Source: Macrostomum lignano
Lineage: Eukaryota
Assembly (NCBI GenBank): GCA_002269645.1
Contig: NIVC01002135.1
Coordinates: 1-35,416 of the forward strand
Direction: 5' to 3'
DNA: 35,416 bases
Below, in pieces: positions 20,901 through 23,900 of the stretch (the stretch's first letter is position 1; the number at the start of each line of letters is the position of its first letter). The position numbers and the translations under genes were made by a program. Under the pieces are notes generated by a model. It saw nothing but the letters and a program-made list of their open reading frames with translations. It made no database searches and had not been told where the DNA came from.

Positions 20901-23900
20901 AATCATTTACGGTGAGAAATTTTAAAACAAAACTGAAGATATTTTTCGTTAAAACTCACGCAGCGCCTCGTTGACAAGAACAATTTCGCTGGCTTTAAGG
21001 TGGTGTCGAAAAACATCACTTCCATGGAGTTTGGCCCGATATCCACCGCTATTGCGTATAACTTGAGCAGGGCAAGGGAGATCTACATCTACGACATGCT
21101 GTCTATATGGAACGTCTATTTAAAGAAGATTGTCTGCAAGCAGGTAAGACAGAACAAAGATTGCATACTCATTTTTAATAGAACTTTTTTGAACTACGAG
21201 ATATTCTGGATTTAAAACAGCGATTAATTTCTCTTTGTTCCATTCCTAACCAAAAGCTTGCGTTAAACTTCACAGATTGAGTACGTGTGTAATTTTTTGG
21301 GGACGACAGATCGATAAAACAATATGGAGATTCATTTTCTATTTTCTCGTAACTATGCGGTATAGAACTTTCAGACCCTTGCACCAAAGTATGGCCAGCC
21401 TCCTTGCTTGACGAGGAGAAAGTCAGGGCGGTGTACACTATGTCAATAGGCTGTGTCTCAACTGTCACCTTGTTCTATGACAAAGCAATTTGACTTACGA
21501 ACCACAAGTACCATACTCTGTAGTTCTTCCAGTGTCACTCCTGTCAGTCATTCATACAATCAAACATTGTCACTCTCCCTCCCCCCATTTTTTCAGCCAA
21601 ACGATGTAAACGAAAGTTATTCGGGTATGACAGGAGATTTTCGACTCTATCCGAATGGCAGCGTGGTTCGAACTGAGTGGCGGATGCACTTCTATGGTGG
21701 CCTGGGATCCGAGCGGCAGAGGGTAACCATTCCGTATTAAGGAGTAAATTTAATATATGGAAATTTTGACGCTAAAAACCAGAGTCGTCTAGCTTTGCGT
21801 GGTTATAGAAAAAGCACTTGAATTACAATTTTTAACCGTATAAAATTTTAGATTGGCAACTGGAGCAGTTTGGGCTCCTTCCATTTCAGCAGACAGCCGA
21901 ATCGAGTTTTGGACGAGGCCACTGTGATCAACGAACTAAATAAAAACACTTTTAGAGTGGTTACAATTTTGGTAAGATGCATAGCGTGATACTGAGACTC
22001 TTTTTTTACTTAAACTGGCAAATAGTATACCAGGTAGCTTTCTTGAATCCAAAATATCCCTTTGCAGAAGCCGCCATTCGTAAAGTACAAGAAGGGATTC
22101 GAAAATCGAAATGATGTTCCCCTGTACGACGCACTTGATGGTTTTGCTATTGACATCTGCAAAGAAATACTGAAAAATATGTCTGTAAGTATGGGAAAAC
22201 CAGATGTGGGGCCGTAGCCTAGAGTAGAGTGGTCTTTCGCGGCGCTCTGATTTTCCAGCGGCCGAGGCTCGGTTTGAATCTCGGCTTGGCTCTGCTCGTG
22301 CAATTTAAGCCCTTGAAGACCCACCCCCAAGGCACAGTGAAGTGTAAATGCCTAACGATATATAATGTTAGGGCCGCTGTACACTCCTGTGTGAGTGTGT
22401 GCCTTTGCGTATGACTGCGTACGTATCCGCACGCTTGTGTGCCTGCTCACTGGAGTCGGCGGAATGGGCAGTAATGCCTCTCGCCGGTTGTGTGACAAAG
22501 TGGGTAATAAAGCTCTACGACCGTAAGTAGTGCTACCTCCATTTTGAAGGACATGTATTACCCTTTTACGAGCAGGCTCAAGGACTTACGATATTTTAGT
22601 GTATACTAAATAAATCCCTTAGCCAGAAAGCCATATGCCATATCCCATGTTTACTGATTTAACAGTTATAAAACGGCTCAACCGATTAACTCATCGAAAT
22701 TTGTTTTTTTCTAAAGACCAATTGGCACAGCTAGTTGATTAGAACTTCAGTTTTAGTATATTTTTATTAAGAATTCCGAAACATGGTGTATAAATACGAC
22801 GTAAGTAAGTTTGAGCGAAATAGAATCCAAAATCAGTTGACTTATGAAAGTGAGTATTTGGGGTAATAATTATCTAAGTATTTTATTGTGCTATTAAATA
22901 TTCGCCTTTGCAACATCCAGATACACGACGTGAGCTTCTTCCTGCAGCCGGATAATCAGTACGGATCTCGGGACAGCCGGGGCAACTGGAACGGCATTGT
23001 GCAGACGCTGATGCAGGGCAAGGCCAATTTCGCATGCGCCAGCCTCTCGGACACTACGGACAGGCGTCAAGTGCTGAAATTCACGCAGCCCTATTTAAAC
23101 TTTCAATTGTCGATTCTGTACAAGAAACGCATAGAAAATCCGCTAGTTTTTATGTTCCAATTTATGCGACCGTTTCATCTGTACACCTGGCTAGCGGTGA
23201 TCGGGTCGGTTGTTGGCCTGTCAATCGTTCTGACAGTTCTGCACAAGCTCAGCAGGAATGCGGCAAACTTCGGAATTTATGAGACTATTTTCTTTAGCTT
23301 CGCTTCGTTGATTCAGGTAATTTGATTTAAGAAGATCAACATACTTTTGATGTAGTTTGTTTAGCTACACCTCTTTGTCCTTGATCAAAGTCAACGCCTA
23401 GTTAAAAGTCGTGTTAGAGACACGTGCATTAGACACTTAGACTGCATAACTCGTTTGTATTGGCTAAAAACTTGAGAGCACATGTACATACACTTTAAAT
23501 AAGTACTGGGTCCTCCTTAATAAAAGTTTCTAGTGATTTCCTTGAGTTACGAGCTAGACTGAGCGAGATAACTACGTAATACGGTATATTGCAGAGGCAA
23601 CATACCTGTATATCAATATGATATTTTATCACCAGGGCATCACGGGAACTCCACCGGATCGACCGTCGGGGCAGCTGGTCATCGCCATCTACTGGCTATT
23701 CGCTTTCGTCATCTTGGTGGCCTACGTCACTAACTATGCCGCTACCAGGACTCTCAACCGTCTGCAGTCGGAGATCACCTCCCTATCTACTCTATACGCT
23801 CAGTCTACTTACGACTATGGAACTGTAGCTGGCACCTCCTATTTCACTCTGTTTGAGAACACAACGGACAATACCCAGCAGCAAATTTATCGTTACATGA

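Follow-up and report, generated by a model that had tools for sequence, protein, structure and literature searches.

The nine-residue motif SYTANLAAF in the third transmembrane segment (M3) is regarded as a hallmark of ionotropic glutamate receptors (iGluRs); it has been used as an inclusion filter in phylogeny (PMC6307864) and for receptor identification (PMC5225553), and one-residue changes within it cause disease in humans (PMC6626132). The gene BOX15_Mlig005297g2 of the flatworm Macrostomum lignano, here named gene A, encodes AYVTNYAAT at this place. The window analyzed here is the entire 35,416-nt contig NIVC01002135.1 of the M. lignano assembly GCA_002269645.1, on which gene A is recorded at 17839-25412 under a product name of "hypothetical protein" only. 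Gene A and its M3 segment are arranged as follows.

17839..25412, plus strand: gene A (product PAA60588.1, or P0003, 837 aa), whose spliced translation is identical to P0003
23663..23770, plus strand: M3 helix (residues 566-601) in the AlphaFold2 (AF2) model
23720..23746, plus strand: M3 nonamer AYVTNYAAT (residues 585-593), counterpart of SYTANLAAF in the gapless alignment to GluK1 and GluA2
23747-23752, plus strand: R594-T595, directly after the nonamer

The segment LVAYVTNYAATRT is encoded by 23714-23752, in exon 10 (23636-24159) of gene A. A first-pass annotation of this DNA had recognized a motif that is real and had placed it at 23713-23751, one base off; translated at those positions, the DNA is read in the wrong frame and meets a stop. 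By phmmer, LVAYVTNYAATRTLNRL of gene A aligned gap-free to ISSYTANLAAFLTVERM of GluK1 and GluA2, and a longer excerpt of the same alignment sets ILVAYVTNYAATRTLNRL against IISSYTANLAAFLTVERM. In mature GluA2 numbering, gene A carries S615A, T617V, A618T, L620Y, F623T, L624R, and M629L, and keeps Y616, N619, A621, A622, and T625; this gap-free alignment confirms the residue mapping proposed earlier (T617V, L620Y, F623T, and L624R, with N619, A621, and A622 kept). Four of the nine SYTANLAAF residues (Y, N, A, and A) are retained, which falls short of a strict gate-motif definition and would just pass the inclusion rule of at least four of nine matches used in PMC6307864. All 7 near-identical gene A copies, drawn from two independent assemblies and annotations, have the same M3, which rules out a sequencing or assembly error.

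The motif had been taken as a peculiarity of gene A; it turned out to be a signature common to no fewer than six paralogue groups of M. lignano, with gene B of this window among them.

27358..34713, minus strand: gene B (BOX15_Mlig022707g2), located by tblastn of P0004 against the window; a paralogue of gene A in tail-to-tail orientation to it
28547..28573, minus strand: M3 nonamer of gene B, AYVGNYAAM
M3 of gene A (P0003): AYVTNYAAT-R
M3 of P0001: AYVTNYAAK-R
M3 of Mlig034115 (P0005/P0180): IYVSNYAVK-R
M3 of Mlig015771 (P0006): TYIANYAAF-R
M3 of Mlig025413 (P0007/P0166): SYVANYAVF-R

Gene B is annotated here as a 400-aa partial protein; its 5' end, the first ~34 codons, could not be located and was lost either in repeats or where the contig stops. 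Genes A and B are adjacent and tail-to-tail on all four contigs carrying them. The common M3 core of these groups, gene B (P0004) included, reads x-Y-[V/I]-x-N-Y-A-[A/V]-x-R-x-L, with the Lurcher-position alanine (eighth motif residue) replaced by valine in two of them, P0180 (Mlig034115) and P0166 (Mlig025413). A profile built from P0001 and the exact exon translations of A and B was searched with HMMER against 1.84 billion representative proteins, giving 6,433 matches, of which the best 150 were inspected and residues were counted over the 148 best representatives. The top group is sharply separated (796 to 307 bits, with the next match at 210 bits), and all of its members are M. lignano proteins. 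Exact SYTANLAAF occurs in 93 of the 148 best representatives, Tyr at L620 in 8 and Arg at L624 in 7, and among these 148 the carriers of L620Y/L624R are the six M. lignano groups, a Taenia protein (P0112), and a MetaClust protein (P0012) only. Similar residues might have arisen by convergence in more distant iGluRs, such as the chemosensory ionotropic receptors (IRs) and the plant glutamate-like receptors (GLRs), which lie beyond the best 150 matches. A neighbor-joining tree on 384 columns of the ligand-binding domain (LBD) and transmembrane domain, with 200 bootstraps, recovered the M. lignano clade as monophyletic at 97% and its union with Taenia P0112 and P0012 at 81%. The clade sits on a long branch, with a mean distance to the other sequences of 1.9 compared with 1.0 among those others.

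Where these changes fall in the channel bears directly on what they may do, and the following elements around M3 are needed to read them.

23155..23172, plus strand: pre-M1 collar segment FQFMRP (GluA2 F515-P520; Q504 = S516, F505 = F517, P508 = P520)
23314..23316, plus strand: Q/R/N-site glutamine Q556, last codon of exon 9, kept in all clade members but P0008
23645..23647, plus strand: pore +4 site, G560; D or E in 117 of 138 other representatives
25212..25256, plus strand: upper M4, LNNTLGIAVINLVGC (residues 772-786), the most conserved 15-aa window in the clade

The gate constriction of GluA2 is made by the side chains of T617, A621, T625, and M629, forming a hydrophobic seal (PMC9068512), and in gene A these positions read V, A, T, and L, all conserved or conservative. 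The pocket bound by perampanel in GluA2 is lined by P512, S516, F517, D519, P520, Y616, N619, L620, F623, and L624, together with S615 of the neighboring subunit (PMC10584687). At these collar positions gene A keeps F517, P520, Y616, and N619, while S615, L620, F623, and L624 are changed to A, Y, T, and R. The initial view that the gate itself had been rewritten thus holds in part: most residues that line the pore at the gate are unchanged or conservatively substituted, and the nonconservative changes sit on the collar face of M3. Further changes accompany them throughout the clade. Upper M4, which completes the collar, carries the clade-fixed changes V792T, A793L, and L799N (GluA2 numbering), the clade-specific residues of gene A in this segment being T775, L776, N782, and C786; in the M2 pore helix a Trp found in 134 of 139 other representatives is Phe; and the acidic residue at pore +4 is replaced by Gly in five of the six groups and by Thr in the other. 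Two further candidates were discarded. The Q or E found at pre-M1 S516 could have co-evolved with Y590 and R594, an idea rejected since the same Q or E occurs in the closest canonical lophotrochozoan receptors and is thus ancestral. A charged pore ring formed by R594 is unlikely, as L624 is listed with the collar-pocket residues, not with the pore-lining ones.

The variant motif is maintained by purifying selection and reflects neither decay nor error, as deduced from saturated synonymous sites alongside a conserved M3 and from the invariance of the copies. Genes A and B share 41% identity over the three compared exons, where the proportion of synonymous differences (pS) is 0.80, that is, saturated, and the nonsynonymous divergence (dN) is 0.62. 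The codons of their shared motif residues differ at synonymous positions only (GTG/GTA, GTC/GTT, TAT/TAC, GCC/GCA, GCT/GCC, and AGG/CGA). Pairwise column identity averages 0.32 over five full-length paralogue groups, and the most conserved nonoverlapping 15-aa windows are upper M4 at 772-786 (0.70), a segment of the amino-terminal domain (ATD; 0.62), and M3 at 582-596 (0.58). No change in the motif was seen among homeologous or allelic copies or from one independent assembly to the other.

Gene A itself is intact, with 11 exons and ten introns, all of them GT..AG.

17839-17920, 18060-18233, 18337-18509, 19940-20239, 20964-21143, 21597-21722, plus strand: coding exons 1-6
21852-21971, 22068-22184, 22921-23316, 23636-24159, 25091-25412 (stop included), plus strand: coding exons 7-11

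The public gene models derive from a genome-guided transcriptome assembled from RNA-seq (StringTie/TACO, TBONE, and TransDecoder; PMC5730564), and the exon structure of gene A is therefore transcript-based. A contig search with the P0003 protein returned the genomic contig only and no transcript contigs, and one with P0001 returned none. Near-identical copies of gene A (g1, g3, and g4) sit on other contigs, as expected from the partly duplicated M. lignano genome (PMC5730564). Intron 10, just downstream of the M3/S2 exon, holds a perfect (GATA)n microsatellite of 718 bp and 179 copies at 24264-24981.

By its architecture gene A is a bona fide iGluR. Pfam detected PF10613 (E 9e-24), PF00060, and PF00497 in the order expected for an iGluR; ANF_receptor was not detected in gene A at E<=0.01. 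The ATD region, residues 23-365, is folded by AF2 as alternating beta/alpha and is part of a full-length alignment to GluK2 and GluA2, and the cluster member P0156 carries the public name of an ANF_receptor domain protein. The AF2 model, made from a 78-sequence alignment, has a mean pLDDT of 87.3 and a pTM of 0.74, with a bilobed LBD and predicted helices M1 (511-534), M2 (543-556), M3 (566-601), and M4 (772-821). The topology of M1, re-entrant M2, M3, and M4 is present, with gapless alignment to GluA2 through M1-M3, and over the 148 representatives the S2 disulfide cysteine C685 is invariant and C743 nearly so. By Foldseek the model aligned over ~860 columns with full-length GluK2 and GluA2 subunits, and phmmer against all PDB sequences gave GluK1 (E 3e-46) and GluA2 (E 1e-42) as best matches; the top 60 PDB sequence matches and the top 50 fold matches are all GluK or GluA. 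These best hits suggest a placement among the AMPA/kainate/delta/phi (AKDF) receptors. Gln at the Q/R/N site is typical of AKDF (PMC12226733), and Q556 agrees with this; the acidic residue that AKDF receptors have at +4 is absent from gene A. A few neighboring representatives bear automatic "delta-like" names. Variant IRs have lost glutamate-contact residues and, apart from the co-receptors IR25a and IR8a, have no ATD. An identity as a chemosensory IR was considered and rejected, given the ATD and the retained R485, S654, and D705.

What such a receptor may bind was read from the ligand site.

23062..23064, plus strand: R472 (GluA2 R485, ligand alpha-carboxylate contact)
23834..23842, plus strand: T623-S624-Y625 (GluA2 G653-S654-T655, ligand side-chain pocket, by alignment)
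23984..23986, plus strand: D673 (GluA2 E705, ligand alpha-amino contact)
24059-24061, plus strand: A698 (GluA2 Y732)
25398..25409, plus strand: C-terminal -ESVA, resembling a class I PDZ ligand

The remaining site residues of gene A are Y450 to F, P478 to S, T480 to S, S654 kept, and E705 to D. These backbone contacts are compatible with an alpha-amino-acid ligand; the side-chain determinants T653, Y655, and A732 match neither the glutamate nor the glycine/D-serine rule (PMC12226733). Arg stands at position 485 in all clade members that include S1, which the fragments P0001 and P0008 do not. Position 705 varies across the paralogue groups (D, D/E, N, S, D, and D), and the acidic residue is missing in P0001 and Mlig034115, so that ligands, or even the gating mode, probably differ among paralogues. 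The gene B copies also differ here, with D versus E at the E705 equivalent in P0004/P0160/P0162 versus P0159/P0161. Five of the six groups end in S-x-[V/A] (-ESVA, -ESRV, -ESYA, -ESNV, and -RPSV) although their C-tails are otherwise unalignable. The class I PDZ-ligand pattern also occurs in the tails of GluN2 and GluK2, and the tails of the clade hint at synaptic anchoring rather than a chemosensory role.

Taken together, we favor, with some reserve, a reading in which gene A is intact and transcribed and encodes a subunit from a fast-evolving, lineage-specific M. lignano clade of AMPA/kainate-like receptors, still an amino-acid-gated cation channel, with altered gating and pharmacology. The clade has fixed the variant M3 motif together with the M2 (W to F), +4 (D/E to G), and upper M4 changes. 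Since the gate-lining residues stay small or hydrophobic, the hydrophobic-seal gate would be kept, and because R485 and D705 are retained these proteins are most likely still amino-acid-gated cation channels. The radical changes S615A, L620Y, F623T, and L624R map to the side of M3 that joins pre-M1 and M4 in forming the "extracellular collar" pocket. In GluA2 this pocket is an allosteric hub that sets deactivation and desensitization and binds perampanel-type inhibitors. Slower or less desensitizing gating, weak or absent polyamine block, and the lack of a perampanel-type site may be the consequences.

Published work on the same positions makes altered gating and pharmacology the best-grounded prediction, and of the proposals of the first-pass annotation altered gating is the one that mutagenesis of S615A, A618S, and F623L supports best. 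In GluA2, S615A enlarges the nondesensitizing fraction 27-fold and slows deactivation and desensitization 5.7-fold, and in an open-state model S615 approaches L624 of the neighboring M3 (PMC5430913). The +4 Asp to Ala change in GluA2 abolishes polyamine block (PMC12226733), and loss of the acidic +4 residue in the clade predicts nonrectifying channels. Several observations weigh against our reading. Human GluA2 A639S (= A618S) abolishes homomeric currents, A639 having been proposed to serve as a hinge of M3, in contact with alanines of the neighboring subunit, and F644L (= F623L) is dominant negative (PMC6626132). As these two changes are so poorly tolerated in GluA2, a working flatworm gate would have to rely on compensating changes, and upper M4, being co-conserved, is the most obvious candidate for them. 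Contacts were assigned to Y590 and R594 solely by homology to GluA2; the tree, made by neighbor joining, concerns a long-branch group and includes no NMDA or epsilon outgroup; the acidic 705 is missing from two groups and the Lurcher alanine is Val in two, so behavior may vary within the clade. Finally, the gene identifiers were not found in papers or in the supplements of the M. lignano papers, and no expression pattern was found. A more specific version, which we put forward tentatively and consider rather unlikely, is that the clade evolved an alternative solution to iGluR gating in which Tyr and Arg side chains of the receptor itself occupy the collar pocket as a built-in "wedge." This would give qualitatively different kinetics (NMDA-like slow, weakly desensitizing, or partly constitutive), a linear current-voltage relation free of polyamine block, and an amino-acid ligand that is neither glutamate nor glycine.

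The same observations have to be weighed for other explanations. Gene A might encode an obligate heteromeric or modulatory subunit, like GluK4/5 or GluN3, whose variant M3 gates only with a partner, either gene B or a SYTANLAAF subunit. That genes A and B have stayed adjacent on every contig carrying them despite their ancient divergence speaks for such a pair, as does the poor tolerance or dominant-negative effect of single changes at A618 and F623 of GluA2; however, tandem duplication would leave the same adjacency, the convergent orientation gives no common promoter, and both genes keep the R485 and D705 ligand contacts, so we see this as a minority possibility. A constitutively open or leaky channel, Lurcher-like or resembling Trichoplax AKDF1, in which the ligand would block or modulate a standing current, is improbable for gene A, which keeps D673, A621, and A622 and has a gate lining that is still hydrophobic. 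It draws on the control of closed-state stability by the SYTANLAAF region, on the stabilization of open or nondesensitized states by S615A, on the Val at the Lurcher alanine in two paralogues, and on P0001 and Mlig034115, which are without the acidic 705, a loss that in T. adhaerens AKDF1 accompanies leak currents (PMC12226733).

Non-ionotropic signaling, also raised by the first-pass annotation, finds little favor here. Such a receptor, GluD-like and acting trans-synaptically or in a metabotropic style, would have a vestigial pore, and a vestigial pore would be expected to drift, whereas conservation in these proteins is among the highest in the pore helix, at the Q/R-site Gln, and in M3 and upper M4. 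The divergent gate motif, the divergent ATD in which Pfam ANF_receptor went undetected, and the PDZ-ligand-like tails, which suggest scaffolding, could be read in its favor. However, GluD, the usual non-ionotropic example, keeps the canonical SYTANLAAF, so divergence of the motif is no marker of that mode, and we consider this explanation even less probable than a leaky channel. A decaying pseudogene, an annotation artefact, or an assembly error could be suspected in a repeat-rich, redundant genome, with very long microsatellites in the introns and a product named only "hypothetical protein." This suspicion is effectively refuted by intact open reading frames (over 11 exons with canonical splice sites in gene A), the identical protein in several copies and two assemblies, the transcript-derived gene model, the signature of purifying selection, and the confident AF2 model.

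The window also holds a neighboring gene and repeats. Upstream of gene A, on the plus strand at 14088-15600, lies a tetraspanin gene (PF00335; public product of 267 aa), and a GC-rich region (57-62%) at ~9700-13500 on the minus strand, with pieces of reverse transcriptase whose frames are shifted, resembles a degenerate retroelement. Tandem repeats fill the introns of gene B (29995-31798, 32463-32761, 33027-33738, and 28736-28906), namely a 42-bp minisatellite (~42 copies, 1.8 kb), (CAGA)75, a 19/77-bp repeat, and (ACTG)43. A GC-rich 20/57-bp tandem repeat at 34747-35416 reaches the contig end and probably explains the assembly break.

The proteins of the clade are already public and uncharacterized, and we found no description of the clade or of its M3/M4/pore signature. 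The studies of iGluR evolution that were checked, including PMC6307864, a 2017 bilaterian study, and a 2025 eukaryote-wide study, do not mention flatworms or Macrostomum, and a literature search combining AKDF with flatworms yielded no paper, nor any naming these genes. As a natural experiment, the clade can help to show which residues of gate and collar are required and which co-vary, the M4 and pore changes matching those of M3, and it illustrates that motif-based filters can hide lineage-specific receptors. If the built-in wedge proves true, the "invariant" SYTANLAAF would be dispensable once M3 and M4 co-evolve. Transgenesis is established in M. lignano, so that the genes are open to in vivo study. 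The practical stakes are modest: the clade adds another divergent branch to an already large family and is known here from sequence.

Compared with the well-studied GluA2, GluK1, and GluK2, gene A has the same three-layer ATD, S1S2 LBD, and M1-M4, and shares the Q/R-site Gln, R485, the acidic 705, the S2 cysteine pair, and the gate residues A621, A622, and T625. It differs in being ~20% identical at full length and in its altered collar, M2 Trp, +4 site, upper M4, and ligand pocket. The highest-scoring relatives outside the flatworms are uncharacterized AKDF-like receptors of lophotrochozoans (Owenia, Tubulanus, Pecten, Lottia, Haliotis, and Bulinus), compared here through P0009, P0010, P0013, P0014, P0024, P0088, P0125, and P0145. 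They share with the clade the Q or E at pre-M1 S516 and group with it at 41% bootstrap; in contrast to the clade, all those checked are near-canonical: most carry SYTANLAAF itself, Lottia P0024 carries AYTANLAAY, and each has Leu or Met at L620 along with a Leu at L624.

Closer in their M3 residues are two other proteins. The Taenia crassiceps "Glutamate receptor U1" (KAL5110580.1, P0112) reads AFCANYASY-R, with Tyr at L620 and Arg at L624 as in the clade, and the MetaClust protein P0012 reads AYVANYGAY-L, with Tyr at L620 as in the clade and without R485. Both are much more divergent (22-33% identity), and long-branch attraction may account for their grouping with the clade. Ramos-Vicente et al. 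described the motif as well conserved, especially at residues 2, 4, and 5, and as relaxed in Lambda and some Phi receptors, and excluded sequences with fewer than four of nine motif matches (PMC6307864). Unlike Lambda, some Phi, and the variant IRs of protostomes, the M. lignano clade probably sits with AKDF-type receptors and keeps the ATD and the backbone contacts, and its variant is a fixed, conserved signature as opposed to a loose degeneration.

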